Positions 1-28,022 of a stretch of 32,000 nt of DNA are shown here, in pieces. The translations under genes and the position numbers were made by a program. Position 1 is the first letter of the stretch. Every line of letters starts with the position of its first letter. Under the pieces are notes generated by a model. That model had not been told where the DNA came from, did no database searches, and was given only the letters and a program-made list of their open reading frames with translations. The DNA lies in contig NW_008806274.1 of the NCBI RefSeq assembly GCF_000400465.1, positions 540,244-572,243 on the forward strand, in the 5' to 3' direction. Source of the DNA: Wallemia ichthyophaga EXF-994. Taxonomy: Eukaryota; Fungi; Basidiomycota.

Positions 1-2317
1 GTGGTGGATCAGGTGCCAAGAGGCGCAGAAGCAGTGAAGGCACACCAAACAAAAAGGGAAAAATGCTCACGAATGAGGAATTAATGGAGAGTATCAGACA
101 GAAGACACTTAATCAGGAACTCCAATTTAAGGATCATGTGGAAGAGCTCGAACGTGTGCGCAAGAATAAATACAACATACCTAAACCCAAGACGGAGCTG
201 TCTGAGCGCATTGATCCGGTAGAGGCGGCCATTAAACGTGCTGAAAGAAAGTCGGAAATATATGCTGATATTGGAGCTGATGATGGAGTAGACAGTGACG
301 ACGATGCTGAGGACGAAGACTGGGCGGGATCGGCTGATGAAGAGGAAGATAAGCCAGCGATTGCATCAGGCTCTGAACGAGGATCAGAAGAACCTGACGA
401 GAATGAGATAGAGAAGGAAAACCACTCATCCTTCTCATCTAATGCTACGAGTGGCAGACCCGAAAACACTCGCAAACCTCTAGGAGAAGCAACCGGACAT
501 GCCTATGATAATGCCAGCGATGATAGCGACGGAGAAGTTCGCGGATATAGGCGGATAAGGAGGATTATCAATGATGACAAGGATGAGGAGCAAAATGAGG
601 CTAGTAAGATTGAGGGTAGATTGGAGTCACCATTTGAAGATAATTCACAGCCTGAGTTTTACATGAATGAGGATGGGCTGCTGACACAGTCGAAGCCGTC
701 AATGGAATTCGCTGAGGAGGGTATGCAAGTGGATAGAACTGAAGAAGTCAATCATGGTAATCAGCTCAGACGCAGATCATATGTGAGTGATAATGACGAT
801 GAGGGTTATGTAGCGAGGAAGCCAATGAGACAGACACAGCAAGCAACTCAAGCGACTCAACCAACCCAGGTAACGGAAGCAACTCAAGCAGCCACACAAC
901 CAGCCACAGAAATCAAGACACAGCAGCTTACGCAAATTGAACCAATACCGACAATGAAAGAATCAACGCAAGCCACTCAAGCTAAACAAACCATCCAAGC
1001 ACCAGCCAGCCCATCTTACAGCGACAGTGACAGTGAGCAAGAGCAACCACCAAAACCATCGAGGAGTGCATTCGATACACTCAAGAAGGGAATGAAGAGG
1101 CAGGAAGAGAGGCAGAAGCGACCAATTGATCCGCGCTACTTTGAAGCACAAGCTGAGATATCTGATGAGGACAACCTGGTAGGATTGATTAGTGATGATG
1201 AAGAAGATGACGAAAGAAACAATCGCCAATTAGATGAGCTGGTGAATGACGACAGGGTGGCACGGGAGACGCGCGACAAGCAGGATAAGTTGGCTACCGA
1301 GAAGTACCAAGAGCAGTTAAAAGAGGACGATGAACTGGATAAGAAGGTAGCGCAAAATGCTGCAGATGGTCGGTATAGATATAGGAGGAGACATCGTAAT
1401 GAGGATGGATTGGAGATGAGTAGTGATGACGATGATATCGAGTTCATGAAGGCGCAGGAACAATTGGCGACTAGGTTGGCAAAGAGAAGAAGGAAACAGG
1501 CTGGAGAAGAGCCGATGGAGAGATATGGTGGGTTTAGATGGATTTTTCTATAATTGACGCTGACATTTGCACTCGATACAGCTCGTAATCCTAGAACTGC
1601 TGCTTTCGTCGCTGCGTTCGAGGCGCCTGCGAATGCTGAAGATTTTGAAGCGGACTTTGATGTGGAACATACAGGTGGACCTTTGATCGAGCAGCCGGAG
1701 CATAGGAAGGATAGTGAAAACAGTGCCAGCGACAGCGTAGATGAGGATGAGGATAGTGATGTATCTGAAAGTACACATCAAAATGACAGCGTTAGGGTGA
1801 AAAAGCAGATGACGTTGAAGGAAGAAGCAGCAGCAATGCGCAATTTCATGGAAAGGGTAGGTCTGCTGCCTTTAACGGTAGCGCCGCAGCTGAGATAACA
1901 ATAACACAGAAACACGCGTACGAAAACATACAGTCGAGCGACTCGGAAGACGAGAGCCAGGCTATGCAGTTCGTCAGGAAGGGCGATCCGGGTAAGCAGA
2001 AGCAGAAGCCGCGCATCGAGAGGCGGGAGAATGATGACGAGGATACTGTGCCGTCGTACGCCAAGGGTCGTAGACCGCTTTCGCCACGCTCGTTGAGCAA
2101 GTTGAAGAAATATGCGCAAGACGAAGGTAGTGGGGTCAACTACTCTGCTGGCGGGGGAAGGAAGGGAGTGACATCGTTTTTGTCAGAATCAAATAGCGCT
2201 GGAGTTAAGAAGAAGCATCAGAGTGCGTCCAAGACGAAGCCATTGCAGTCGCAATCGCAGCAGTCATCGCAATCGAAGCCATCGTCCAAACTAAGTTCGT
2301 TCGGGAAGTGGAGTTGA
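1..2317 (+). CDS. MRC1: MRC1/claspin-like replication checkpoint mediator, 5'-partial; exons <1..1527, 1582..1856, 1910..2317
   Basis: The frame is open upstream of the ATG at 63 to the window edge. The protein is acidic and low-complexity, with a dense TQ cluster at 831-980 and an MRC1-like segment YFEAQAEISDEDNLVG. Introns 1528-1581 (GTGGGT..TACAG) and 1857-1909 (GTAGGT..CACAG) join three track ORFs in frame. Confidence 0.8.
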
Positions 2318-2384
2318 ATAGTGTGTAAATCTATATGTATGATTATCGTGGTAACTGTTACATGAAATTGTACAGCACACAAAT

Positions 2385-3962
2385 TTAGAGATGTGCCGTG
2401 GCAGTTGTGCGCCTATAGTAATCGGCTTTAATGAGATCGGATGCTCTTTCAGCTACCATTTCGACAGTGATCATAGGATTAGCGGTGACCATAGAGGGGA
2501 AGACAGAAGCGTCTACCACTCTAATACCTTTCATGCCCCTAATTCTGAGGAGAGGGTCTAAAACAGCGGATGGATCATTAGCTGCGCCCATTTTGCACGT
2601 ACCTGCTGGATGGTAGACGGTGTGGTGGACAGCTCTGCCGTATTTACCAATATCTTCATCGCTCTGCACGTGTGAACCAGGGGCAACTTCCTCTTTGAGC
2701 CACTTGGCGAACGGCTCCTGTTTAGCGATCTCCCTTGCAATTTTGATGCCGTCAATGATAGTCCGCTCATCTTGGCGAGCGGGGTCGGTGAAATAGCGAA
2801 AGTCGAGTGCGGGCTTGACGGAAGGATCGGCGCTAGTGAGGTAGAGTCTGCCGACCGACTTGGGTCTGCAGACATTAGGTGTCATGCATATAGCGTGCTC
2901 GGGGCGTGGGTAGCCGAGTCGCGCGGTGTTGTCAGCGAAAGGAACAGAATAGACGTGGAACATGAGATCTGGGCGTGTTTCGCCGTATTCTTTAACGCGC
3001 TGAATAAAGAGAGCCGCATCGGATTCCATTACTGTCTTGTCCTCGAGCGGCGCATGGAGCGACCACATGATGATGGACTCGGGATGGTCGAGCAGATTCT
3101 CACCGACTGGCAAATCAGCAGTAAGAGGAATGTTGAGGCGACGGAGCTGCTCAGCGGGACCAATGCCGTTGAGGAGGAGGAGTCTAGGTGAGTCGATAGC
3201 GCCAGCAGAAAGCAAAACCTCATGTCGACACCTGAAAGTGGTGCGTGACCCGCCTTCCGGTGTAGCTTCAACACCGACCACTCGATCCCCATCAAAGAGG
3301 AGCTTGTCGACCCACGAATTCAGCATGAGGTGCAAGTTAGGCCGTTTGTCCATGATAGGATGCATGTATGCGACTGAAGCCGACGACCGCTTCCCGTCGT
3401 GGGGTGTGTATGCAATGCTCAGCCAGCCCACACCCTCCGTCCACACCTTGGTGCCGTGCGAGTGGCGAGTCTGCGCCCAAGAGTCGAAGTTGTCGATCAC
3501 AGGCACGCTAGTGGCCCGTTGCGAGGCGTCTATCCAGTCGCCCATGATCGGGTTGCGGTCTTTGTGCGCCGGCGGCTGGATGTGATTGAGGAGGCGATCG
3601 CCGTACGCCTGCATCGTGTGGCTGTCCCATCCGCGCGCACCACGCTTCACCCACTCATCGAGATCTTGCGGAAAGGGGCGGAAACAGATGAGAGTGTTGT
3701 GGGAGCTGCACCCGCCGAGTACTTTGGCGCGTGAGTGCAGGATGTGCGAGTTGCCGTGTGGCTGCGCGACGGTCGGGTAGGCGTAGTCGAGCTCCCCGCC
3801 GAGCAGAGACAGCCAGGATCGCAGCTGGAGCACCTCCGGGTGGTTGCGGTCGTCGGGGCCGCCTTCGATCACGAGCACTGATATCTCTGGCACCTCGGTC
3901 AATCTGTTTGCCAGCACCAGCCCCGCTGTACCGCCGCCGATGATTATATAGTCGAATTCCAT
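2385..3962 (-). CDS. codA: Choline oxidase (GMC oxidoreductase, CodA type), intronless, about 525 aa; an alternative in-frame upstream ATG lies at 4037
   Basis: FAD-binding motif DYIIIGGGTAG; HSRAKVLGGCSSHN carries the His that covalently binds FAD in Arthrobacter choline oxidase; HTVYHPAGT carries the active-site His; C-terminal ANPMITV..AER; the protein ends in -AHL (PTS1 consensus). Confidence 0.85.
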   Translation of the reverse strand: MEFDYIIIGGGTAGLVLANRLTEVPEISVLVIEGGPDDRNHPEVLQLRSWLSLLGGELDYAYPTVAQPHGNSHILHSRAKVLGGCSSHNTLICFRPFPQDLDEWVKRGARGWDSHTMQAYGDRLLNHIQPPAHKDRNPIMGDWIDASQRATSVPVIDNFDSWAQTRHSHGTKVWTEGVGWLSIAYTPHDGKRSSASVAYMHPIMDKRPNLHLMLNSWVDKLLFDGDRVVGVEATPEGGSRTTFRCRHEVLLSAGAIDSPRLLLLNGIGPAEQLRRLNIPLTADLPVGENLLDHPESIIMWSLHAPLEDKTVMESDAALFIQRVKEYGETRPDLMFHVYSVPFADNTARLGYPRPEHAICMTPNVCRPKSVGRLYLTSADPSVKPALDFRYFTDPARQDERTIIDGIKIAREIAKQEPFAKWLKEEVAPGSHVQSDEDIGKYGRAVHHTVYHPAGTCKMGAANDPSAVLDPLLRIRGMKGIRVVDASVFPSMVTANPMITVEMVAERASDLIKADYYRRTTATAHL

Positions 3963-4043
3963 CTGCCTGTTTGATTTGAAAATTTTTGATTCGCCGTCGT
4001 CGTCGCCAGAAGAAAAGTTTACTATCTCATCTGTCATCAACTC
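3963..4043. promoter_or_regulatory. Putative ultra-short bidirectional promoter between codA and the ALDH
   Basis: Only 81 nt separate the divergent ATGs. The interval contains an AT-rich TGAAAATTTTT element at about 3977-3987 inside otherwise GC-rich DNA. Confidence 0.5.
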
Positions 4044-5608
4044 ATGGCGTCACCGAAATTATACACAACGATCCACGCGCTTAAGACAAAGATCGAGGTG
4101 CCGCTGGGGCTGTTTATCGACGGGGAGTTCAGGCGGGGAGGCGGTGCAGCCTTGTGAGTTGAAGTGGGTGGATAACGGCGATGTGCACGCTGACACGACG
4201 CAGCCACACGATAAACCCCGAGAACGAGCAGCCAGTGGTCGCAGATACCGTGCAAGCCGCGAGCAAGGCTGATGTCGATGCCGCAGTGAGCGCAGCCCGC
4301 CTAGCATACAACACGACATGGGGGCAGACAGTGGAAGGGAGTGAGCGATCGCGGCTAATGCGCAAGCTGGCCGACCTGATAGACCGTGATACATGCCTAC
4401 TCGCTGCGGTGGAAGCACTCGACGGCGGCAAGACGGTTACGTGGTGTGAGGGCGATATCGCCGACGCGTCTGCCTGTTTGCGCTACTATGCCGGTTGGGC
4501 TGACAAGATACACGGGCAGACACTCGAAGGACATGCGCCTACGAAGATGTCCTTCACCCTCCACGAGCCCGTCGGCGTCGTGGGGCAGATCGTACCGTTC
4601 AACTACCCGCTCATGATGGCAGGCTGGGCGATTGCGCCTGCGCTAGCAGTTGGCTGCTCTGTCGTATTCAAGCCGGCTGAGGCGACGCCGCTGTCCACGC
4701 TCCTCCTTGCGCAGCTGGTGCATGAGGCCGGCTTCCCAAAGGGTGTGTTCAACGTCGTCAACGGTAGCGGGCGCGAGACAGGCGCGGCGATTGCAGAGCA
4801 CCCCGATATCGACAAGGTATCTTTCACCGGTTCCACAGCTACTGGCCGCGGCATTGCCGTTGCTGCAGCGCGCTCCAATCTCAAGAAAGTGAGCTTGGAA
4901 CTTGGCGGAAAATCTCCCAGTCTCGTCTTTCCCTCTGCGGACATAGACGAGGCCGTCAAATGGAGTGCGTTTGGCGTGTTTGAAAACGCTGGACAAAGCT
5001 GCTCCGCCGGCACGCGTCTTCTCGTGCACGAAAGCGTATATGAGCAGTTCGTAAACAAGCTAGCACATGCGGCTGACGCGATAAAACTCGGCAGCGTACT
5101 CGATCGGTCCACGCAACAGGGACCACAGATCCACCGCGCACAGTTCGAAAAGGTCATGCAGTATATAGATATTGGTAAGGCAGAAGGTGCGCGCGTGGTT
5201 GCAGGTGGTACGCGTTACGGTGATACTGGCCTCTTTATCCGCCCGACCGTCTTTGCGGACGTACATAACGGCATGCGTATCGCGCAGGAGGAGATATTCG
5301 GACCCGTCGTTGTCGTGATTCCCTTCAAAAACGAAGACGAGGCGGTGGAAATGGCGAATGATACCTCTTACGGCCTCGCTGCGGCTATACACAGCAAGCA
5401 GGCAGATGAGGTGGGAAGGGTGATGCACCATCTCAAGGCGGGAACGGTTTGGGTTAATCAGTACACCATGCTCTCGCATAACACGCCTTTTGGTGGTTAT
5501 AAGCAGAGTGGGTGGGGCAGACAACTCGGCAGCTACGGACTCGACGCGTACATGAATGTGAAGGGCGTTAGCTGGAACTACGGCCCTGAGGCGGCGCCCA
5601 AGTTATGA
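4044..5608 (+). CDS. NAD(P)+ aldehyde dehydrogenase, probable betaine aldehyde dehydrogenase; exons 4044..4153, 4204..5608; 504 aa
   Basis: The true N-terminus MASPKLY..VPLGLFIDGEF is joined by intron 4154-4203 (GTGAGT..GCTGAC..CAG) to FHTINP. Motifs present: PFNYP, KPAEATP, FTGSTATG, LELGGKSP (catalytic Glu), AGQSCSAG (catalytic Cys), EEIFGPV. The protein ends in -PKL. ALDH family membership is certain; the betaine aldehyde substrate is inferred from adjacency to codA. Confidence 0.8.
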
Positions 5609-5751
5609 TGTGGTGGGTTTTCGAGTGGGCGATTTCGTAATTTTTGTAGTTTGTTTTGAATAGTGAGTAGTGAGTAGTGATTACTGTTTAGAGAGCAGCC
5701 TGTAGTATAAAAATCAAAGCGATAATTAGCAATACACTGTGTACCTGAATC

Positions 5752-5848
5752 AGGCACACTCGAGGCACCCTGAGTGTTGAGCGAGTGCCTTGAGTGCCTT
5801 AGTGCTGGGTGCCTTGCCAGCGACGCCTCCGCCTCAGCCTCAACACTC
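5752..5848. repeat. Cluster of direct and inverted AGGCAC/GTGCCT and GCCTC motifs
   Basis: AGGCAC at 5752 and 5763; GTGCCT at 5785, 5794 and 5809; GCCTC at 5825, 5831 and 5837; a perfect 10-bp inverted repeat GAGTGTTGAG (5772-5781) / CTCAACACTC (5839-5848). Confidence 0.7.
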
Positions 5849-5993
5849 TAACCAACCACCAAATATTCCCGCACGACCACCGATCACCTGCACCAAGCTG
5901 AAGCGACACCGCTAGCGAAGAGAGCAGGGCAACGTGAAAAAATAAATAATAAAACTAATTCGTAAGCAGCGCACACCCAACGCAACACGCACA

Positions 5994-6302
5994 ATGACGC
6001 TCACAGGCGGCAGTACAGGAGCAGGAGCAGGAGCAGGAATGGGTCCAGGGATGCCCATGGATAATAGCGTGCACGGAGACGGCCGCTGCAACGTCTACCC
6101 CCTCTCTACAGATAGATTGGAGTGCCTGCCATCACCATCAAATGCGCAGGTAGCGGTGGCTGTCGTGCTCGGTGGACTCGCCGTCGTGGCATACACCGCC
6201 GTCGTCGCAGCCTTGCTGCTCGTCCGCAGGAGGGCGAGACTGGGCGAGAAGGAGCGCGAGCAGGAGTGTGAGTGCAAAGGCGTGGACGGGATAGTGGGGT
6301 AG
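5994..6302 (+). CDS. Hypothetical small single-pass membrane protein (102 aa)
   Basis: An AT-rich tract lies upstream, the ATG context is ACAATG, and a 25-aa hydrophobic stretch VAVAVVLGGLAVVAYTAVVAALLLV is followed by RRRAR. I recognise no family. Confidence 0.4.
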   Translation: MTLTGGSTGAGAGAGMGPGMPMDNSVHGDGRCNVYPLSTDRLECLPSPSNAQVAVAVVLGGLAVVAYTAVVAALLLVRRRARLGEKEREQECECKGVDGIVG

Positions 6303-6407
6303 TATATTCCATCAACAAGCAAGCCATCAACCAAATCAACGCTATCTATCTATCTATATGATACAAACGAAACAGGAAGCAATCCACACACTCACACTGA
6401 CTCCCAC

Positions 6408-8150
6408 TTACTCCATCGCAGCAAGGCGATAATCCGCGAGGTTGTGATGTTGAGACGGGGAAGGCGATCCAAAGAGGCGATCGCGCCCATTGAGGGATTT
6501 CGGAAAGGCGATGGTGTCACGAATAGAGGTTGTATCGCACATGAGAGCGATGAGCCTGTCGAGCCCGAGCGCAATACCAGCGTGAGGGGGGGCACCACTA
6601 GCTAGGGCTTGTAGGAGGTGACTGAATCTACCCACCTCCTTCTCGCTCAGACGTAAGACGTCTCTAAAAACACTCTCTTGTAAATCCGCCTCATGAATAC
6701 GCACACTGCCCCCACCGATTTCGCACCCGTTGAGTACGAGGTCGTAGTGCTGGCCGCGCACGCGCTCTGGGTTTGTGTGGAGGAGGTGCACGTCGTCTGC
6801 ATGTGGTGCTGTGAAAGGATGGTGAGTGGAGGCGTAACGCCCACGTGAGAGATGTGCTTTATCCTCATCCGCACGCGTGAAGAGCGGGAACTCGGTGATC
6901 CACGTGAAAGCATAGGGTGTGGTGTGGGGGAGGGCGAGGTGATCTGCAAGCGCCAGACGCAGTGCTCCCAGTGCAGTTCCCCCACCGTCGGGATACACCG
7001 GCGTATCTTCACACCACACCACATCCCCCTCTTGCAGGCCGAGCGAGGCGACCATCTGTGGTGTGGGCGGAGTAGGAGGGTGAGCAGCGTAGAATTCTGC
7101 GCTCACTCGCGAGGCTGTCTCTTTGTCCAGCGTGAGTGCTCGCGTCTGCATTTGAGTTTGCTTTACGCCACCACTACCTACACACTCACCTCCACCCTCA
7201 GCCACGCCGCGTATGGCCAAATCGAATCGCAGGTCGGGCTTGTCGGAGCCGTAAGTGTTCATGGCGTGCGTGTAGGACATGACGGGTATGCTTGGAATGT
7301 GGGTGTGCATATACCGCGCCCACAACTCCCCCACTAGCCCTTGGATAAGCTGGCGGATCTGCTCACCACCGATATTCCACCCGCGCGCGCACGAGTCAGG
7401 CGAGGCAGCACCATTGACATAGGCCATTTCAACATCCAGCTGGGTAAACTCAGGCTGCCTATCCTTCCTGCCATCCTCATCACGGAAACACCTAGCAATC
7501 TGGAAATAGGCGTCAGTGCAGCCAGAAGCAATGAGGAGCTGCTTGGGTTGCTGGGGCGATTGGGAGAGCGCGTAGAAGGAGGGAGTGTCGGAGGAGCGTG
7601 TGGGGACGAGGAACTCCCGCGCGCCTTCGGAAGAAGAGTTGAGGAGGATCGGAGTTTCGATCTCGGTGAAGCTGAGGGAGTGGAGGTGGGTGCGGATAGA
7701 GTGGGTGATCTGAGACCGGCGCTGGAGAGTTTGGGTGAGGCGCGTGCTGCGCAGGTCGAGATAGCGGTGCTTCAGCTTGAGATCGACGTCGGAGGAGCAA
7801 GTGGGGGAGAGAGGATTGAAAGGGAGTGAGCGGGCCGCGTTGAGCATGTCGAGGCGGTGCACGTCGAGCTCGATGCTGCCTGTCCTCAAATTGGAATTGG
7901 ACGAGTCACGGAGCTTCACTTGGCCAGAAACCTGGATAACTGAGTTTGTCGTAGTGTTTGGTGGGATTAAAGTATTTGGTGTGATTAGCTGTATAACACC
8001 GCTGTGATCTCTCAAGTCGATGAAAGATTTCGCCTTGTTCAGCCGTCGAATCGAGATCAAATGGCCAGCGAGGTTTACAGTGCTATTGAGATCATCAACA
8101 CCAACTAAACCACACAATTTTGATCTTTTGAATAAATTAGAGAGTGTCAT
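6408..8150 (-). CDS. MSD1: Aspartyl-tRNA synthetase, mitochondrial/bacterial type, intronless, 580 aa
   Basis: OB-fold FIDLRDHSG; ETPIL..SSEGAREFLVP; LSQSPQQPKQLL; motif 2 YFQIARCFRDEDGRKDRQPEFTQLDVEM; HHPFTAP; YDLVLNGCEIGGGSVRIH; motif 3 GAPPHAGIALGLDRL. Confidence 0.93.
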   Translation of the reverse strand: MTLSNLFKRSKLCGLVGVDDLNSTVNLAGHLISIRRLNKAKSFIDLRDHSGVIQLITPNTLIPPNTTTNSVIQVSGQVKLRDSSNSNLRTGSIELDVHRLDMLNAARSLPFNPLSPTCSSDVDLKLKHRYLDLRSTRLTQTLQRRSQITHSIRTHLHSLSFTEIETPILLNSSSEGAREFLVPTRSSDTPSFYALSQSPQQPKQLLIASGCTDAYFQIARCFRDEDGRKDRQPEFTQLDVEMAYVNGAASPDSCARGWNIGGEQIRQLIQGLVGELWARYMHTHIPSIPVMSYTHAMNTYGSDKPDLRFDLAIRGVAEGGGECVGSGGVKQTQMQTRALTLDKETASRVSAEFYAAHPPTPPTPQMVASLGLQEGDVVWCEDTPVYPDGGGTALGALRLALADHLALPHTTPYAFTWITEFPLFTRADEDKAHLSRGRYASTHHPFTAPHADDVHLLHTNPERVRGQHYDLVLNGCEIGGGSVRIHEADLQESVFRDVLRLSEKEVGRFSHLLQALASGAPPHAGIALGLDRLIALMCDTTSIRDTIAFPKSLNGRDRLFGSPSPSQHHNLADYRLAAME

Positions 8151-8170
8151 GGTGGTTGTGGTACAAGCTT

Positions 8171-8550
8171 CTATTTCTTACGATTTCCACCTTTTCTACC
8201 GTTGAAAGATGCCCCAGATCTCGCCTGCTGGCGCTTGCGATGTCTGCCTACGTCTCGGCCGTGGGTTGAAACCTTTTTGTCGGTATTCGAATCGGTGTTG
8301 ATGGGCATCTCACCAGCACCCAGATCCTCTGCAAACTCAGGTCTATTGTCCTTAATAGCCTCGTCAGATGGCTGTGTGCTGGTCAGTCTACTGTTCAGCC
8401 TAGCCAGCCTCGCTTGATCCTTTATATGGTAATCTGAATCCTCCCTGCTACGCTTAGCAGATCTGTGCGCCTTTTTCACATTTGATCCTGTAAGCCTGGT
8501 TAAGTCTGAGCCACTTGATTGGGAAATAACCCACTCATGGATTTCGCCAT
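8171..8550 (-). CDS. DUF2423 / LLPH-like small basic protein; exons 8550..8535, 8487..8171; 110 aa
   Basis: Intron 8534-8488 (GTGGGT..TTACAG) restores MAKSMRSNVKKAHRSAKR..QARLARLNSRL. This matches the MAKSxRS..K..R..KR N-terminus of yeast YBL028C/LLPH-type proteins, and the C-terminus is K/R-rich. Confidence 0.75.
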
Positions 8551-8574
8551 CTTGGTTGTTCAACTCTAACCATC

Positions 8575-10410
8575 ATGGCAGATGAAAATAATCACATGGA
8601 CGAGAATAATAATAATAATTCTAAATTATGGCATTATATTAGGCGGGTGTTGTTTATATGGTTTGTTAGTAAATCCTTGAGTTATTTCATTGGTTTGGGT
8701 ATTGGCAATGGCAGCGTAACTAATCCACCTCCAATCACATCCCCCCATTCCCCGCTTACACCGAAACACGTTACCAGTCTCTGGGACACCCACACTAATA
8801 TGGATTTATACATTAAACTCAGCACACTCGATCACCCAGATATCACCAGCAACGACGACGACGACGAATCCACCCTCCCTCACCTTCTCTGGGAAAACAT
8901 CCACTACGGTGACTGGAACCTACACAGAGAAGCCACTCTAGATTTACACCTCCCTCCCAGCGTCACTCACCACAACCACTCCCTCTACGCTGATTTCTAT
9001 CTCTATAAACATGGCAGTCTTCTTAATAGCAGCGATAGTAATTTCGACCCTCTGTCTCTTGTTCACTCCCGTAAACCTCTCATTCGCTACCTTCCAAAGC
9101 AAAAAGAGCGTAAACAGGTCAATTTGTTGGAGGGTGATAGCGAGGTTGATAACACTGACGATGTCATTAATCAATCACAGCAATCAATACAACCTTTATA
9201 CACCCCTTACTACCATCCCTCTCTCCCCCTCAACATGATCCAAGACACCAGCATGAAAATTCCCTACACCTCATCCCCACCACCCACACGCTCTTACATC
9301 TCCTTAGACCCTTCAAACTCGTACCATTACCCCATCCTTTACCCAAACGACTTATGGCTCCTTCGCAGTCAGTTGATTGAAATTAACTCCACAACTACTT
9401 GCCTCCCCTTGACAATAACACTCGACTCTCTCACATTCTTCAAATTCAATCTCTACGCCAACATAAACGAGGGTATTGAGCGGAGTGCCCAGCAGCAAGG
9501 TACAGCAGGTGAACTTGACGAGTTTAAACGCATGATCCTCGAAACAAATCCTTACTTCCTCGCACTTACCATGTTAGTAACTCTCCTTCACACCCTCTTT
9601 GAATTCCTCGCTTTCAAAAGCGACGTCAGTCACTGGCGGGATGAGAATCACGACATGGTTGGTGTCTCACTCAACTCAATACTCGCAAATATAGCAGTCC
9701 AGCTGATTATCCTGCTTTATCTCCTCGACAACAACGACAATGCAAGCTGGACAATTATCGGTGGTCAGGGTGTAGGGCTGGTGATAGAGATGTGGAAGGT
9801 TACCAAGGCGGTAGATGTGGGTGTGATGCGTAGTGAAAACAGATGGTTACCTCACATCCGCTGGTCTGACAAGAAGCAACTCACCGCCGAAGAAAAGAAA
9901 TCACGCGAATATGACACCCTCGCTTTCAAATACGTCAGCTGGGTGATGATACCCATCCTACTCGCTTATACCATCTACTCCCTCCTCTACGACACACATA
10001 GAGGGTGGTACAGTTTCGTTGTATCTACACTCACATCCTTCGTCTACGCGTTCGGGTTCGTTCAGCTCATCCCACAACTCATTATCAATTACAAACTTAA
10101 AAGCGTTGCTCATATGCCAGGACGCGCTATGGTTTACAAAACACTATCGACCGTTATAGACGACTTGTTCTCGTTTATTATTAAGGTTTGTGTGGTTGCC
10201 GTAGTCTATCTATCTAACATCACCTCGCAGATGCCACTCCTTCATCGCCTCAGCTGCTTCAGAGACGACGTCGTGTTCATCATCTACCTCTACCAGCGTT
10301 GGATATACGCGGTGGATCCTGATAGATTGAATGAATATGGCCAGGCTACGGATGAGAAGGTGAACAAAGTGAATGGGGCGAGTAAGGTGGAGAGCAAGAA
10401 AGATCAATAG
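8575..10410 (+). CDS. CLPTM1: CLPTM1-family membrane protein (putative lipid scramblase); exons 8575..10185, 10231..10410
   Basis: Motifs ETNPYFLALT, FEFLAFKSDVSHWR, EYDTLAFKY, PQLIINYKLKSVAHMP. Removing the in-frame 45-nt intron 10186-10230 restores FIIK|MPLLHRLSCFRDDVVF. Confidence 0.92.
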   Translation: MADENNHMDENNNNNSKLWHYIRRVLFIWFVSKSLSYFIGLGIGNGSVTNPPPITSPHSPLTPKHVTSLWDTHTNMDLYIKLSTLDHPDITSNDDDDESTLPHLLWENIHYGDWNLHREATLDLHLPPSVTHHNHSLYADFYLYKHGSLLNSSDSNFDPLSLVHSRKPLIRYLPKQKERKQVNLLEGDSEVDNTDDVINQSQQSIQPLYTPYYHPSLPLNMIQDTSMKIPYTSSPPPTRSYISLDPSNSYHYPILYPNDLWLLRSQLIEINSTTTCLPLTITLDSLTFFKFNLYANINEGIERSAQQQGTAGELDEFKRMILETNPYFLALTMLVTLLHTLFEFLAFKSDVSHWRDENHDMVGVSLNSILANIAVQLIILLYLLDNNDNASWTIIGGQGVGLVIEMWKVTKAVDVGVMRSENRWLPHIRWSDKKQLTAEEKKSREYDTLAFKYVSWVMIPILLAYTIYSLLYDTHRGWYSFVVSTLTSFVYAFGFVQLIPQLIINYKLKSVAHMPGRAMVYKTLSTVIDDLFSFIIKVCVVAVVYLSNITSQMPLLHRLSCFRDDVVFIIYLYQRWIYAVDPDRLNEYGQATDEKVNKVNGASKVESKKDQ

Positions 10411-10492
10411 ATGAATTTATTTATAGCAAGTATTTAATTAATTTGATTTGTTTAGTTTTTATTTTTTACTTTTACTTTCACGCCTCACTTTC

Positions 10493-10522
10493 ACGCGTCT
10501 CTTTGTCGCGTCTGTGTCGCGT
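10493..10522. promoter_or_regulatory. MCB-like (MluI cell-cycle box) cluster upstream of CDC6
   Basis: ACGCGT at 10493-10498 and TCGCGT at 10506-10511 and 10517-10522. CDC6/cdc18 are established MBF targets in yeasts. Confidence 0.55.
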
Positions 10523-10620
10523 TCGCTTGTTTATCTCCAACGCCCAACTGCGAATAGCTGCACATTTGCACAGCTGCACACGTACACAGAAGAAGACATC
10601 CTGCCAGTCTCCACCTGTAT

Positions 10621-10664
10621 CTACATATATCTGCATATATCTGCATATATCTGCTTCTATCTGC
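10621..10664 (+). repeat. 10-bp tandem repeat (CTGCATATAT, about 4.4 degenerate copies) in the CDC6 upstream region
   Basis: ctacatatat ctgcatatat ctgcatatat ctgcttctat ctgc. Confidence 0.8.
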
Positions 10665-10730
10665 TTTAGAAGAAAAGCAATTGCTCAGCCACAGCCACGT
10701 AAACCCAGCGCACACAACGCACAACAAAAC

Positions 10731-12935
10731 ATGCCACTCAGAACATCACGCAGATTGCTCCACCTCGATCCACAATCCACCGAGGAGGATTTAGATCTGT
10801 TGGGGCTCGACAAGCAGCTCAATATTGTAACTCCGAGGAAGAATAATAGACGGCAGCCACATCCGCCCAACGGAGATACCACAGAGGAGGAGGATGAGGC
10901 TGTTAGTGATGCACATGCACATGCTGCTACTAATACTGCCACAATCACTCAACCATCTTCACAATCACCTTCTCCAAAACGGAAATATAGACAAAAACAG
11001 AGACACAGTCGTTCAGAAAATACACAACCTGGCACTGGTAATGACACTGGCAATGACACCACCACAGACACAGACACAGACGCACCTAATCTAATCAAGA
11101 AACAAATCACTCCAGAGAAGAAGAAACGTGGTGACAGTGTCAGCACTGCCAACAACACGCACACGCACACACGCACATTGCGTAACTCTCATTCAACTAC
11201 CTCAACTCAATCAACTCACCTCACTCACCCATCCACTCGCGCTGCTCTTGCTCGCGAGAGTACCTTTGGCGAGAACAGAGACACAAATAGAGACACAAAC
11301 AAAGACACAAACAGAGATAACTCAGGTGTCTTTAAAACACCCAGCAAAACACCAAAAACACCCTCCAGAACAACACGCAATTCCCTCAAAAAGCAGGACA
11401 CCTTCGATGAATACATCCAGCAGCCCAAGACGCTTTTCAAGGAGCTGGCGGGAAGTGTAGAGACGGAAACAGCGACTCACACTCCCTCTCACTCCCGCTC
11501 CACCCCTCTCCTGCGCCAAGACACACTCAACACGCTCAGCCAACCCAGCAACATATATGCAACAGCGCGCAACGCCATCCGCAGTATGAACGCAGCATCT
11601 GATAGTGACGAACTGGTTGGACGCGATGAGGAAATACGTACGATACGCAACTTTATCGATCCTGCCTCCCCACACTCCTCCCTATATGTCTCAGGACCGC
11701 CAGGAGGAGGTAAGACTGCAGCTGTGCGGTTGGTAACGCGTGGCATGCGCGCGCGATGGCTCAATTGCATGACTTATAGCGGGGATGGGCTGTTAGAAGA
11801 GGTGATGAGTGTGGGTGTGAGTATGGATAGGAAGAGCGATAAAGATAAAGACCAACCGAGGTGAGTTGAGTTGGATGCAAGCTAATATCCTACGCTAATT
11901 CTAATTCTAATTCTAACTTAACACAGACTGGTTATCCTTGACGAAATCGACACTCTCGCACACGAGCATCTCCTCAAGCTCTTCCAGCTCTTCCAGAATC
12001 AGAACTCGAGCCACACGAAGCTGATAGGGATAGCGAATGCACTTGATCTGACGAGCAACCAGCTGCAGAACCTAGCGCACCCACCAGTACATCTCCAAGT
12101 ACACGCGTACACCTCGGCGCAGTTGGCGGCGATAGTTGATGCGCGTCTTGGAGTATATCGCCAGCTGTTCATCTCCCAAGCGCTCGAGCTGCTTGGGCGG
12201 AAAGTGGGCGCGCAAACGGGGGACCTCCGTCAAGTGATTTCGGTGCTAACGCTTGCACTCGACAGTGTAGAGAAGGAGCAGCGGCGGAGTAAGGGAGTGG
12301 AGGGTGTATCTCAACTGACGTTGGAGGATGCCCCGCGTGTAACGATGCCTGTGATGCTAAAGAGCATCTCTGTGCGCGTCACCTCCGCCCAGAAAACCAG
12401 TCGCGGTGGCAAACTGGCTGGTCTCAATCTATATGCGCGCATCGCGCTGCTGTGCGTTATGCTCACTATGAAACGCAGATCTAAGCTCAGAAGCCGCGTC
12501 GGACTGTACGAACATTACTGCACCCTCCTGCGCACCCACTCCACTCTCAACCCGACAACCAAATCTGACTTTATTGATCTCGTCAATGTCCTCGTTAGCG
12601 CTAGTATCGTCGTCGAACTCGCTGCTCCGTTCGATCAGAATAGGAATGCTAGTGACGCCTTACTAGGCACTCCTAGCAAACGCGCTCGTAATAGAGCTGT
12701 TGCTGCTGCTAGCGAACCGGAATTCGGTTTGCAGTATAGCGAGCATGAACTCATACGCTTGTTGGGCGTCGCTGATGAACAGCATACCCTCGATGATCCT
12801 CTCCTCGAACAATTGAAACGTGTCTATTGGGGTGAGTGTAGACGTATCGATGCCGAAGCTGTAAGGTTGGAGTGGAGTAAGAGAACACCGCTTGGTGAGA
12901 ATAACAAAAATACACCAGTAGATGTTTTCGTTTAG
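10731..12935 (+). CDS. CDC6: Cdc6/Cdc18 replication-licensing AAA+ ATPase; exons 10731..11860, 11927..12935; 712 aa
   Basis: Walker A YVSGPPGGGKT. Intron 11861-11926 joins to Walker B LVILDEIDTL. Sensor-1 LIGIANALDLT, GDLR sensor-2 and a C-terminal winged-helix region are present. The long disordered N-terminus has S/T-P sites and coding RDTN/KDTN repeats. Confidence 0.9.
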
Positions 12936-13026
12936 ATAGTATTATAGTATATCACATATATCGCATAACACATCAACTCATCAAGTCAAATCCATTTAAC
13001 ATTACATTCATTAATAGTTAATTGCT

Positions 13027-13740
13027 TTACTTCTGCACACCCTCGTGGATAGCTTTGAGGAACTCATCGCCGAGCTTCTTAGCACTGGCAGGGTTCTGGC
13101 CTGAAATATACACACCATTGGCGTTCTTGTCGACAATGACACATTCGCCCCATGGCTGGTCAGCCTTGACGTAGACACCGCCGTGTCTCTTGATGTGATC
13201 CTCTGGTGTCTCAGAGATGCTCTGGACCTTGCCGACCATTTCTTCCTCGGTGTTGGAGAAGGCGGTTGCTTGTCTACCCTTGTAGATGGACTCGCTGTGC
13301 TTATCGACGACGTTGCCGAGGACACCACCTGCGTGGCACACAGCAGCTACTGGCTTGCCTGCTTGGTAGATACGGCTGATGACGCGCTGTGCGTCGTTGT
13401 CCTTGATAAGGTCGATCGATGGACCGTGACCACCTGGAAGGAAAACAGCGTCATACTCGGCAGGGTTAATTTGGGAGAGAGGGACGTTGTTCTGGTACTT
13501 GTCTGCGCGGTCCTTGAGGAAAGACATGGATTCAATGTCATCCTTGAACATAGCGATAGATCCTGGATCAATCACTGAGTGTCCTGTTGGTGAAGCGAAT
13601 GTAATGTCTACGTGTTGGTGGATTGCATAGAATGGGTGGGCCAATTCACTGATGAACACACCAGTGTCTTCGCCTTTGAGTGTTTTGGTGGCGGAAGAGA
13701 GGACGATAAGAACCTTTGGAAGTGTAACTGCTGATGACAT
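13027..13740 (-). CDS. HSP31: DJ-1/PfpI family protein (Hsp31/glyoxalase III-like), 237 aa
   Basis: TGVFISELAHPF (conserved Glu), DAVFLPGGHGP, AAVCHA (nucleophile Cys-His), ISGQNPASA. Confidence 0.88.
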   Translation of the reverse strand: MSSAVTLPKVLIVLSSATKTLKGEDTGVFISELAHPFYAIHQHVDITFASPTGHSVIDPGSIAMFKDDIESMSFLKDRADKYQNNVPLSQINPAEYDAVFLPGGHGPSIDLIKDNDAQRVISRIYQAGKPVAAVCHAGGVLGNVVDKHSESIYKGRQATAFSNTEEEMVGKVQSISETPEDHIKRHGGVYVKADQPWGECVIVDKNANGVYISGQNPASAKKLGDEFLKAIHEGVQK

Positions 13741-24446: not shown

Positions 24447-27400
24447 TTACTTTCGATCGCTCAGTGGACCTAAATCTACCCAACTCACTCTAGGTGCTGT
24501 TGATGAATTTTGTCCTAAGGTTTGTCCTCCTGATCTTTGCCTCATATGCCCTGGTTCTCCATTCATTGATTCGAACGCTGACGTATGCGCAAGTGGTTCG
24601 AATGATTCTGATGGTGTAAACGGTGATGCTACTGAGTAAGATGAACTATCTGGCGTTTCAGAACCAGAGTTTATAATCGCTGATTTAAATTTAGACATTC
24701 TTGCATCTCTCTCCTGCTCTTGTACGAATGCAGGTATGGCGTTCCCTGCAATAGATTGTCTCGAAGGCAAGAACCAAACAGACTGTGGCCTGTTCTCATC
24801 GAAACCTTCGTTGAGCAATTCTTCCATTGCATTAGCATCATACTCTCTTCCACCACCTTTCATCAACAGATCATGTGCAGGTGTGAGTCTTGAAGCTGGA
24901 GGTGGATGTTCGCTATTAAACTCATTATAGTTACCAATTTCTTCACCCCACTTATCTTCTTCACCGTATGAGCTAAGAGATGTGTTATCGCTCTCCGCGT
25001 AGTCTGTTGAATCTGGATGTAACGAATCTGGTGGATTGAGATCGTTGTAGAATGCTCTTTGACCGAATGCTTTTTCATATTCTTTTCGTGTCCTCTCCTC
25101 TCGTTTCGTTTTGCGCAAGCGAGAACGTTCCCAATCTTCCCACCTGCGTAATGGTATATTCACAGTAAACAACTCTTCCTTATCGTCATGTGCCACACTC
25201 TTTGCTTCACCTTCAACTTTACGAGTTTCACCCCAGGAAAAGTCATCAAAGTGCCAGAATGAATACACAGGCAACACCAAATTCCATATCGGCAGAGCGA
25301 TAATGTAGATAACCATCCAACCAATGTAGACAATCTTGAAATTTGTGATAAGAATGAGAATTGCAGGTAAACCAAGAACAGCACAAAGCATCATGAGTGG
25401 AATTGCATCAGCAAATTGAGTAGGTGGTGTGATAATTGAGTTGATGATTAATGCCAATGAGAGGAGGATAGCGATTGGAAGAACGACGGTACCGATAAGA
25501 TCCATGAGAATCACGAACTGCATCGAAAAGCAGAAGGTACCACATCTTAGTGAAATGTCAACTTTGCTAATGCAACTCAAGAGTCACTTACAAGTTCCTA
25601 ACCAATACCAACTCCATCAAGTTATGTACAGTTGAGTTGATCCAGCGACGGCGCTGAGATAGCAAAACCTTGAACTCGTCCGGAGCGATGGTTCTACAAC
25701 GTGCAGATGGACAGAACATCATTTTGCGGTTAGGGAAGGTTCTTAACATCATTGTTGACAAGAATCTGTCTTCACCAAGTAAGAGAAGATTCTTTTGATG
25801 CAAAGTTTGAACGTCTGTTTGACTATACTGCTCTACTATGTCTGGTTTTACTATGAGTGGTACCCAATCGTCTTCCTCATCACGTCTAGCCTTGATACGA
25901 TACATGGAGAAACAACCTGGTAAACAAGTAACACCACCGAACACACTCTCGAATGCCTAAATTGGGTTTAGTTCGCGAGATCAGTCTAACATAACACGAC
26001 TCACTTTGACCATGTGATGGGAGATGTAGTACTCGAATACCTGTATCCAAGTAACCCAGCTAGCCCGTTTGTTTTCCAATCTAGTTTCACCACAAACACC
26101 CATAATCAAGTTATCGTGCTGCATGCATAGAATCAACTTGGTGAGTGCGTCAGGAAAAATCTTGGTATCAGCATCAATCATGAATATTGTTTCAAAGTAG
26201 TCAGGCGTAACGCCCATCAGAGTATGAATCTTTCTGAATAAATCGTAATCTAATGGTGTCATACGATCGTTGTATGTAACTCTAGAGAAGAAGTTCATGA
26301 GAACTATCTGAGAATCTCTTTTTCCTCTGTTTCCAGGCTTTGAAGCAGAGGCAGCCTCATCTTCAGTACCGCACTTTACCAACACGATTGTAGGAGTTCT
26401 GTGACCATTCTTTGATTTGTAATGTCCAGCATAAATCATAGCTCTATTTTCCTGCTTCTTGCCACCACCAACGGCCAAGTAAGCCATTGGCATTGGATTA
26501 CCGAAACGTGGATCTGGCTCAATCATACTGACGCAAATATCAGGGGTTGACATTTTTTCACCGTGCCCAGTGATCATACCATCTGCGACAATGAAGATGA
26601 GTTTGCGCTGGTCAGAGTAGTCACTAGCGGATATTGATTCCACTGTCGTTGCAATACTATCATGGCCCTCAGAGTAGCATGTAATGAGGCAGCATGTATA
26701 CAGCTCTGGACCAACACGTGCAGCCGAAATGATAGGATCATCTGGGACCAATGAGCGGTACTTGGCATCCTTGGCAGCCTTCTTACTTGATTTTGGCTCA
26801 GCACCATCAGAAGCCCAGGGTGCAGTTCCTTTTTTGTTGTTAACGCTGATGTTTGCACCTGAAGGCATAACAGATGGTGAAACAACGGATCTGGACATGT
26901 TCTTTGGAGGCTCGGTGAACTTCTTGGCTAGATACCAATTAAACAGGCAAGCCATAATGAAACGAGCCAAGACGACACCAAGGATAATAATGAGTGCAGC
27001 GTAGAGGAATAACTTGGAAGCGAAACAGCCTGGGGACATGTGATCGATTTGTCCAGCTTTGTAACGCTCGTGGAGACAAGGGACTGCATCCTTCAAATCT
27101 TTCGTATTGTAGAACATTTTGGTAGCATCTTTGCCGCCACTTGTATCAACCTTAAAGAGGACCTTACGAATAGCCTGATCAACAGGGTCATCAGGAATCG
27201 GCGACATCTGGCGATTCAAATATGGTGTCAAATTAAGTACAGTACCTCCAATGACCATCATGTTACGTTTGGCGGTTACATTCGACCAAGAGTAGCCAGA
27301 AAGGGTGTGGTCGGGTACCAGACCAAGACTGGATATGACTGACTCTGTCGGAGGGTCGAATGAACATTCAGAACCTTTAGAACAGGTGTTGATGGTCGCG

Positions 27401-28022
27401 TACGGGGCTTTGTCATCATTGCAGTTTTCTAAGGTACCACGACGGAAGTAATTTGTCATATCAATACCGGGTGAGCCTTCGCCCATGGCCTTGAAATCAG
27501 GATTATGAGCAGTTGCATTTTCTGTTAGATAGTTCTTCCCAGCAATCGAGACAGTACCAAACTTCATACCGACTCTTTCGAATTTGGTGTCCATAGTTCC
27601 CTCCGAAGACGGACAAAGAACTCTATCAACGCCCATACATATGAAGCCGACGATCGCAGCTAAGGAAGCGCAAATCAAGCAAAGTGAAACCTTTTCACGC
27701 CATGCCTGTCTCTTTGCTGGCGTGTGGACGAATAACTTAAGCAGAGGATCAGGTATATAGAAAGTGAGAGCGATGGCTGTATAATGCCAGGGACCCTTGT
27801 TCATTTCTGCGGGCTGCGTTAACTGGATACTCCGAGAGCGGATTACTGCGTACCGATGGAAGGGCCACCGGGCTTGACCAAAGGGGTAACTGGGGGAGCT
27901 CTTTCATGCTTAGTGAGTGTGCGCGATCTGCCAATCGTCGTGTTCTGCCTATGGTCAAGCATGCCGGTGCCAGAACTAGAAGCTCTTATCGCTGTCGATC
28001 TTGGTCTCAAGTTGTCTGCCAT
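24447..28022 (-). CDS. Chitin synthase, division 2 (class IV/Chs3-like, with cytochrome-b5-like region); exons 28022..27854, 27806..26005, 25956..25592, 25545..24447; 1144 aa
   Basis: RSRTLTK.ER N-terminus; QAWREKV; ITCYSEG; [11 protein letters not shown]; MIDADT; VCGET; [11 protein letters not shown]; LGEDRFL; QRRRWINST; LCGTFCFSM; [12 protein letters not shown]. No myosin motor domain. Confidence 0.95.

Follow-up and report, generated by a model that had tools for sequence, protein, structure and literature searches.

The stretch analysed here (the window) comprises 32,000 nucleotides of Wallemia ichthyophaga EXF-994, from contig NW_008806274.1 (positions 540,244 to 572,243), and carries two genes that lie head to head. 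On the minus strand, an intron-free gene (2385-3962) encodes a GMC flavoenzyme of 525 aa, facing a plus-strand gene (4044-5608) for an aldehyde dehydrogenase (ALDH) of 504 aa with a single 50-nt intron. An earlier sequence-only reading had described the pair as a choline oxidase divergent from an ALDH in a Wallemia-like host. Both genes are present where it placed them, and both products are near-identical to W. ichthyophaga proteins, in agreement with that host. The gene models are as follows:

2385-3962, minus strand: predicted choline oxidase gene, ChoA/CodA-like GMC flavoenzyme, stop codon at 2385-2387 (based on open reading frame, Pfam, structures, tree and active-site table)
3963-4043, no strand: spacer of 81 nt between the start codons, holding an unconserved in-frame upstream oxidase ATG at 4035-4037
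4044-4153, plus strand: ALDH exon 1, 110 nt; the spliced product matches the public model P0121
4154-4203, plus strand: ALDH intron, 50 nt, GTGAGT...CTGAC...CAG
4204-5608, plus strand: ALDH exon 2, stop codon at 5606-5608; ALDH1/2-like, of the basidiomycete Glu297 clade

Compared to the public W. ichthyophaga models, the oxidase was reported as 100% identical to P0001 (525 aa), with two residue differences, and the spliced ALDH translation is 99% identical to P0121. The start codon of P0001 is the ATG at 3962. The longest oxidase open reading frame (ORF; 2385-4040, minus strand) starts at a TTG, has its first in-frame ATG at 4037, is 551 aa long and adds 26 residues; use of the upstream ATG would leave 6 nt instead of 81 nt between the two start codons. 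This longer model (TTG 4040 or ATG 4037) was rejected, as the extension varies among Wallemia species and precedes the flavin adenine dinucleotide (FAD) motif. The ATG at 3962 is the likely start because the upstream extension is not conserved in Wallemia and the FAD-binding GxGxxG-type motif (IIGGGTAG, residues 7-14) follows directly after it. The N-terminal extensions of some other oxidase gene models are likewise not homologous across species. The ORF at 4181-5608 (plus strand) is just the in-frame portion of ALDH exon 2. Pfam matches are GMC_oxred_N (PF00732, 2.6e-33) and GMC_oxred_C (PF05199, 3.4e-37) for the oxidase and Aldedh (6.9e-174) for the ALDH.

The GMC enzyme is strongly predicted from its sequence to be a choline oxidase of the fungal ChoA/actinobacterial CodA-like type. 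Its best solved structures are choline oxidases (2jbv, 3nne, 3ljp and 9ugm, with E values of about 1e-125), followed by the next GMC enzyme at 1.9e-73. In the numbering of 2jbv, the choline oxidase (CodA) of Arthrobacter globiformis, the residues Trp61, His99, His310, Glu312, His351, Val464, Tyr465, His466 and Asn510 are kept, and only S101T, W331S and N512M differ among the residues checked. His88 aligns with CodA His99 inside the conserved motif GGCSSHN, and Glu295 aligns with CodA Glu312, which we take to bind the trimethylammonium group of choline. The CodA-type assignment and the intact covalent-FAD and active-site histidines of the sequence-only reading are borne out by structures, residues and tree alike (His88 for H99, His336 for H351 and His451 for H466), with Glu295 and Asn495 kept as well. 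These residues are encoded at:

2478-2480, minus strand: Asn495, corresponding to CodA N510 (alignment to 2jbv)
2610-2612, minus strand: His451, corresponding to the catalytic CodA His466 (alignment to 2jbv)
2955-2957, minus strand: His336, corresponding to CodA H351 (alignment to 2jbv)
3078-3080, minus strand: Glu295, corresponding to CodA Glu312; kept across the fungal and actinobacterial clade, variable in outgroup GMC proteins
3699-3701, minus strand: His88, corresponding to CodA His99, the covalent FAD attachment site (alignment to 2jbv)

A signature of 12 residues (W61, H99, T101, H310, E312, S331, H351, V464, Y465, H466, N510 and M512) is identical in Wallemia and in the widespread ascomycete clade with Aspergillus and Talaromyces proteins annotated as 'choline oxidase (CodA)'; other basidiomycete orthologues share it, as do proteins of Streptomyces and Nocardiopsaceae. 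The substitutions S101T, W331S and N512M were considered as a sign of an altered substrate and dismissed, as they are common to the whole clade, including Aspergillus ChoA. The oxidase misses the NCBIfam cut-offs for the choline dehydrogenase BetA (TIGR01810 and NF002550, with 305 vs 732 bits and 343 vs 605 bits, respectively), which is expected because BetA belongs to a different GMC subfamily; the enzyme is, as judged by homology, not a BetA-type dehydrogenase. A GMC protein of Fusarium solani (P0244) was tried as an ascomycete ChoA reference and set aside, because it is a diverged paralogue without His99 and Trp61 and lies in a different gene cluster. In Fusarium solani-melongenae (L011), this ChoA paralogue has Ile at the position of the covalent-FAD histidine and Gln at that of Trp61. 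It lies among genes (1311-13678) for a DAO-family oxidase, a cupin, an SSADH-like ALDH, a Zn2Cys6 regulator and an old-yellow-enzyme homologue, together with a second ALDH gene; the cluster probably serves another kind of catabolism.

Homologue comparisons for the oxidase and the ALDH drew on the best 120 matches each, and trees were constructed by neighbour joining with bootstrap (200 bootstraps for the oxidase). In the oxidase tree, a clade with 99% bootstrap unites the Wallemia proteins, other basidiomycete proteins, CodA-annotated proteins of Aspergillus and Talaromyces and actinobacterial CodA-like proteins. A. globiformis CodA (44% identity to the Wallemia oxidase) and the Dietzia protein fall outside this clade, and fungal monophyly inside it is weak (43-56% bootstrap). 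The Wallemia oxidase is sister to that of Athelia (100%), followed by the Microbotryomycetes and then the rusts, an order that approximately follows the species tree. The matches listed include orthologues from rusts, from a Leucosporidium yeast and from many ascomycetes. As to the phylogenetic check proposed earlier, the oxidase groups with fungal ChoA and actinobacterial CodA-like proteins and not with non-choline GMC families.

The choline oxidase function of the 99% clade is anchored by genomic context, i.e. by neighbouring genes for betaine aldehyde dehydrogenase (BADH), for OpuA-type transporters or in the position of BadA. In Spinactinospora (L005), the oxidase gene directly follows one for a GbsA/BetB-type BADH (best structure 4mpb, 5e-166). 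In Aspergillus sclerotioniger (L012), the ChoA orthologue (7001-8724, plus strand) is divergent from a BetB-type ALDH (4117-5684, minus strand). In the actinobacterial assembly GCA_042666495.1 (L004), OpuA-type ABC transporter genes (ABC_tran, BPD_transp_1 and two OpuAC) follow a protein of 880 aa. This protein (6001-8643) consists of an ALDH domain and a CodA-like oxidase, and is either a true fusion or a frameshifted pair.

Between the Wallemia oxidase and those of Streptomyces and Streptosporangiales, the identity is 58-66%; for the Nocardiopsaceae, it is 60-66%, as close as that of other basidiomycetes. This closeness of fungal and actinobacterial oxidases (58-66%, within the 99% clade) points to an old inter-domain transfer. 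Such a transfer is not Wallemia-specific, given the introns in other fungal orthologues and the grouping of the fungi in the tree; any inter-domain transfer of the oxidase predates the Dikarya radiation. A literature search on horizontal transfer of choline oxidase found nothing relevant.

The ALDH retains the catalytic triad of its family (Cys303, Glu269 and Asn170). It is 53-56% identical to Aspergillus AldA-type proteins, whose genes have no GMC neighbour, 43% identical to actinobacterial BADH and 35.7% identical to the BadA-position ALDH of A. sclerotioniger, as reconstructed from its locus. In the neighbour-joining tree of its best 120 homologues, it falls into a basidiomycete-only clade (77% bootstrap) with members, among the matches listed, from the three Wallemia species, Microbotryomycetes, rusts and some Tremellomycetes. 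This clade is marked by the motif [FYH]-E-N-x-G-Q-[ST]-C around the catalytic Cys (VFENAGQSC in Wallemia). The Glu six residues before that Cys is present in 21/21 clade members, whereas 92/92 other fungal ALDHs among the matches listed have Tyr, Phe or Trp. Further clade-specific residues are Trp117, Ser302 and Trp474; at the positions of Trp117 (4392-4394) and Trp474 (5513-5515), other fungal ALDHs have Met/Ile/Val or Ile/Leu. The key residues are:

4601-4603, plus strand: Asn170, oxyanion (motif position, alignment)
4898-4900, plus strand: Glu269, general base (motif position, alignment)
4982-4984, plus strand: Glu297, clade-specific, six residues before Cys303
5000-5002, plus strand: catalytic Cys303, corresponding to ALDH2 Cys302 (motif position, alignment)

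From the ungapped spacing to the Cys and published numbering, Glu297 presumably corresponds to human ALDH2 Phe296 and spinach BADH Trp285. In spinach BADH, Trp285 is part of an aromatic (cation-pi) box that holds the trimethylammonium group. The BADH-type aromatic residue six before the Cys is thus missing in the Wallemia ALDH. This lowers the case for family membership, but not necessarily that for function, since an acidic Glu297 could still bind a cation.

The head-to-head pair, together with the same flanking genes, is also found in Wallemia hederae (L003) and Wallemia mellicola (L010). The start codons are separated by about 78 nt in W. hederae, 52 nt in W. mellicola and 81 nt in W. ichthyophaga, and such short distances in three species probably indicate a shared promoter region. 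The spacer at 3963-4043 is presumably a shared or overlapping bidirectional promoter region; judged by eye, nothing obvious was conserved in the spacer sequence across the three Wallemia species. In Leucosporidium creatinivorum, 6 kb separate the oxidase from the orthologous ALDH, and the two genes are again divergent. The synteny survey that had been suggested earlier therefore yields a divergent pair in three Wallemia species and Aspergillus, and a looser linkage in Leucosporidium. With 4884 genes and 10 Aldedh-domain proteins in W. ichthyophaga, the probability that one given gene directly adjoins an ALDH gene is about 2 x 10 / 4883, i.e. about 0.4%. Because pairs recur with other ALDH types in Aspergillus and actinobacteria, the combination of oxidase and ALDH appears to have been selected repeatedly.

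Some public gene models of the sister species are doubtful (L010 5691-8002, L010 8001-9776 and L003 6157-7922). The W. mellicola ALDH model P0123 (595 aa) is spliced past the real ...APKL stop into the next gene and looks wrong, as does the W. mellicola oxidase model P0003, which has an unconserved N-terminal extension of 19 aa overlapping the ALDH start codon. Relative to W. ichthyophaga, the W. hederae ALDH model P0122 contains 16 inserted residues, which resemble an unspliced intron. In W. hederae (L003, around 8024) and W. mellicola (L010, around 8081), an apparent intron (GTGAGT and GTATGT, respectively) follows the first eight codons of the oxidase. A loss of this intron in W. ichthyophaga, whose genome is the most compact, is suggested by its oxidase reading straight through at 3936-3962. 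W. ichthyophaga also lacks the additional stretch found within the ALDH models of W. hederae and W. mellicola.

Both proteins end in sequences resembling a type 1 peroxisomal targeting signal (PTS1), for which the consensus [SAC][KRH][LM] was applied:

2388-2396, minus strand: C-terminal Ala-His-Leu of the oxidase, matching the PTS1 consensus
5597-5605, plus strand: C-terminal Pro-Lys-Leu of the ALDH, PTS1-like, kept in all three Wallemia species

All three Wallemia oxidases end in AHL, and the other basidiomycete orthologues examined end in ARL, SRL, SKL or AKL, with the exception of Tilletia. Its actinobacterial relatives have unrelated C-termini without PTS1. The PKL end of the W. mellicola ALDH is hidden in the public model. 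Relatives in the ALDH clade end in CKL, SKL, LKL, IKL or MKL; housekeeping fungal ALDHs have no -KL end. Among ascomycetes, the BadA-position ALDH of A. sclerotioniger ends in AKL and its ChoA orthologue in PRL, and the ends PKL in Hortaea and SRL in Colletotrichum are PTS1-like as well. As predicted from these ends, both Wallemia enzymes are apparently peroxisomal, and an H2O2-producing oxidase beside an aldehyde-consuming partner would be a coherent design. Such signals would be no less compatible with a catabolic oxidase system than with osmolyte synthesis.

From the structural matches, families, residues, tree placement, synteny and C-termini described above, we infer the substrates, localisation, co-regulation and physiological role as follows. 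With a probability of about 0.5, the locus is a two-enzyme peroxisomal unit that converts choline via betaine aldehyde to glycine betaine and is used for choline nutrition. The GMC enzyme would oxidise choline with O2 to betaine aldehyde and H2O2, with FAD covalently bound at His88, catalysis by His451, His336 and Asn495, and the trimethylammonium group held by Glu295. Like other choline oxidases, it could probably continue to glycine betaine by itself. The ALDH, with Cys303, Glu269 and Asn170, would most likely turn betaine aldehyde into glycine betaine with NAD(P)+. It may be a basidiomycete ALDH1/2-derived enzyme recruited to this role, in which the pocket residue Glu297 could bind the cationic head group. 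The PTS1-like ends of both proteins would put H2O2 production beside catalase. Choline would be used as a nutrient, with glycine betaine as a product or intermediate, as in Aspergillus fumigatus.

Several observations weigh against such a two-enzyme unit. The Wallemia ALDH fails both NCBIfam equivalog cut-offs for BADH (NF009725, 462 vs 593 bits; TIGR01804, 514 vs 668.6 bits), whereas the A. sclerotioniger BadA-position ALDH scores 714 bits against the cut-off of 593 and has a BADH as best structure (8skf, 2.7e-180). The best structures for the Wallemia enzyme are class 1/2 ALDHs (7kqv, 5e-153, full-length protein), and solved BADHs rank lower; with one and the same query, spinach BADH scores about 1e-116 vs about 1e-147 for class 1/2 enzymes. 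The ALDH was accordingly rejected as an orthologue of BetB/BadA, given the failed cut-offs, the 35.7% identity and the separate basidiomycete clade. The choline-to-glycine-betaine module of the sequence-only reading is therefore upheld in part: sequence supports the oxidase step, but the ALDH is not an orthologue of BadA or of the bacterial or plant BADHs, and because of this its step is assigned from gene position. A literature search on basidiomycete choline oxidase or BADH found nothing relevant. Members of the ALDH clade are also present in Rhodotorula, Rhodosporidiobolus, Cutaneotrichosporon and Vanrija; none of these genera contributes an oxidase orthologue to the best 120 matches, so that the substrate of the ALDH may be broader or another one. 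Regarding linkage, 1.8 Mb separate the oxidase and ALDH in Meredithblackwellia, the oxidase of Puccinia and Athelia has no ALDH within 8 kb, and the Wallemia-wide conservation of the pair is not independent evidence because the flanks are syntenic too. Regarding localisation, PKL is non-canonical at the first PTS1 position, and the A. fumigatus enzymes are reportedly cytosolic; C-terminal tagging could mask their PTS1-like signals.

Many of these points would also suit a possible, though less favoured, explanation, in which the oxidase alone carries out both steps and the ALDH is a general peroxisomal (amino)aldehyde dehydrogenase, acting e.g. on polyamine-derived aldehydes, adjacent to the oxidase because of the compact genome or an old linkage. 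Choline oxidases are known to catalyse both oxidation steps (PMC6563132, PMC12807369), and the very dense gene packing of the W. ichthyophaga genome, the class 1/2-like ALDH, the spread of its clade to taxa without a ChoA orthologue among the matches listed, and the unlinked genes of Meredithblackwellia, Puccinia and Athelia are in line with it. However, an ALDH neighbour has a chance of about 0.4%, in Leucosporidium, too, the oxidase is linked to this ALDH orthologue, pairs recur with the two other ALDH types of Aspergillus and actinobacteria, both proteins carry PTS1-like ends, and the clade-specific pocket glutamate suits a cationic aldehyde.

The two-enzyme unit could also serve osmoadaptation, with choline from the environment (salted fish or meat, brine) being turned into glycine betaine that accumulates as an unrecognised N-containing solute beside glycerol. 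The classical route to an osmoprotectant leads from choline to glycine betaine, and halophilic Nocardiopsaceae are the source of close bacterial relatives of the oxidase, which adjoin OpuA transporter genes. Betaine and choline go unmentioned in the W. ichthyophaga genome paper and reviews, as does glycine betaine in Wallemia in the literature examined. Nevertheless, we regard this role as unlikely, and the salt-adaptation unit envisaged by the sequence-only reading as unsupported. The pair is present equally in the less halophilic W. hederae and W. mellicola, and rusts, yeasts and ascomycetes that are not halophilic have the oxidase as well. Peptides of both the oxidase and the ALDH are absent from the 639 genes published as differing between 10% and 30% NaCl, and for W. 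ichthyophaga, the solutes on record are glycerol, arabitol and trace amounts of mannitol. For A. fumigatus, glycine betaine is reported to act as an intermediate of catabolism instead of protecting against stress, and peroxisomal oxidases in fungi usually serve nutrient use. Choline utilisation is favoured by the occurrence of the oxidase in non-halophiles and of the pair in less halophilic Wallemia, the absence of both from the salt-responsive genes, the lack of reported betaine, and the role reported for A. fumigatus; the pair is more probably catabolic than osmoadaptive. Quite unlikely as a whole is the broader proposal that, in Wallemia and some Microbotryomycetes, the BetB-type BADH of the fungal choline oxidase cluster was displaced by an unrelated ALDH1/2-derived enzyme that binds the quaternary ammonium group through Glu297 and not through an aromatic box, with all enzymes peroxisomal and betaine being an overlooked N-containing solute of W. 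ichthyophaga when choline is available.

As to the oxidase itself, its identity of just 44% to the best-studied CodA of A. globiformis, the exchanges S101T, W331S and N512M, and scores far under the BetA cut-offs would allow for a different alcohol, either another quaternary-ammonium or amino alcohol or an uncharged one. This seems very improbable, however, since the three differences are clade-wide, including Aspergillus ChoA and bacterial genes in BADH and OpuA contexts, Glu312 and all catalytic residues are kept, and failure of cut-offs made for another GMC subfamily is expected. The GC content might suggest a recent horizontal island, acquired from a halophilic actinobacterium with a codA-BADH operon: it is 0.55-0.61 across 2500-8000 of the window vs about 0.45-0.49 in the flanks, and the Nocardiopsaceae oxidases are as close as those of other basidiomycetes. 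The GC-rich stretch, however, spans not only the oxidase and the ALDH but also a small ORF and the gene for a mitochondrial-type aspartyl-tRNA synthetase (AspRS), and the syntenic loci of W. hederae and W. mellicola have no GC step. Moreover, the ALDH is of fungal type, with a spliceosomal intron and 43% identity to actinobacterial BADH, and the oxidase groups with fungi, with intron-bearing relatives in other basidiomycetes. The island was thus rejected and has next to no probability; the GC excess is specific to W. ichthyophaga and not a signature of transfer.

The flanking genes are ordinary and encode, among others, an MRC1-like protein, the mitochondrial-type AspRS, CLPTM1, an ORC/Cdc6-like ATPase, a DJ-1/PfpI protein and chitin synthase, consistent with the housekeeping surroundings noted earlier. 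The small ORF at 5994-6302 (plus strand) encodes 102 aa with a Gly/Ala-rich N-terminus, the motif C-x-YPL-x-x-D-x-x-x-CLP and one predicted transmembrane helix; a Pfam search gave no match. Because it is homologous to the C-terminal extension erroneously joined to the ALDH in W. mellicola P0123, it is taken as a conserved gene for a small membrane protein between the ALDH and AspRS. Chitin synthase matches (Chitin_synth_2 and CHS4 domain) are found in two long minus-strand ORFs, 24447-25580 and 25981-27804, which are presumably exons of a single gene split by an intron or ORF gap. A tRNA scan across the window found none.

The two-gene logic seen here has been assembled at least three times, with a GbsA/BetB enzyme in actinobacteria, a BetB/ALDH9 enzyme in Aspergillus and an ALDH1/2-derived enzyme of the Glu297 clade in Wallemia. 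This would clearly exemplify how one member of a conserved metabolic gene pair is displaced by a non-orthologous gene; if the Wallemia ALDH is indeed a BADH, it would also define a new solution for trimethylammonium recognition. The consistent PTS1 signals predict that fungal choline oxidation is peroxisomal. For halophily, the pair is mainly cautionary, as it is neither halophile-specific nor among the genes differing between the two salinities tested (10% and 30% NaCl).

The choline oxidase/ALDH pathway itself is already known in fungi, and the Wallemia pair is a variant with a non-orthologous ALDH. A study by Lambou et al. (2013, Eukaryot Cell 12:853) reportedly dealt with the choline oxidase/betaine aldehyde dehydrogenase cluster of A. 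fumigatus. The existence of such an Aspergillus cluster, invoked by the sequence-only reading, is confirmed by the divergent pair of A. sclerotioniger and by the neighbouring A. fumigatus genes badA (AFUA_8G04080) and codA (AFUA_8G04090) (PMC4551469); the characterised pair is also described in PMC6563132. A. fumigatus codA/choA and badA are likewise an adjacent FAD choline oxidase and NAD-dependent ALDH, and the A. sclerotioniger genes are divergent as in Wallemia. The Aspergillus oxidase belongs to the same fungal clade, with an identical active-site signature and about 56% identity to that of Wallemia; the Wallemia oxidase has a canonical PTS1, that of A. sclerotioniger the PTS1-like PRL. 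The partners differ, with a BetB/ALDH9-type BADH in Aspergillus and a non-orthologous ALDH1/2-like enzyme of the Glu297 clade (35.7%) in Wallemia, and the spacer is about 1.3 kb in Aspergillus vs 81 nt in Wallemia.

Compared to A. globiformis CodA (2jbv, 4mjw, 3nne and 3ljp; E of about 1e-125), the Wallemia oxidase has the same fold, domain order and key residues. Unlike it, the A. globiformis enzyme (44% identity) lies outside the 99% clade, has S101, W331 and N512, and lacks a PTS1. The BADH-codA operons of actinobacteria (Nocardiopsaceae and Streptomyces) contain the closest non-fungal oxidases (58-66% identity), with the same signature and also paired with an ALDH. Their genes are co-directional or fused, without introns or PTS1, whereas those of Wallemia are divergent, and their ALDH is of the GbsA/BetB type (4mpb, 5e-166), with 43% identity to the Wallemia ALDH. 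The latter has its best matches among class 1/2 ALDHs (fungal AldA/Ald5 and human ALDH2/ALDH1A; 7kqv and 1o02), with which it shares the catalytic Cys, Glu and Asn. It differs from them by Glu instead of Phe/Tyr six residues before the Cys, Ser instead of Cys flanking the catalytic Cys, Trp117, Trp474, the -KL end and the linkage of its gene to a choline oxidase. Plant ALDH10 enzymes are NAD-dependent BADHs/aminoaldehyde dehydrogenases that act on cationic aldehydes and are peroxisomal via a C-terminal SKL-type signal. They would be functional analogues of the proposed Wallemia enzyme, but belong to a different ALDH family and use an aromatic box with Trp285 where Wallemia has Glu.

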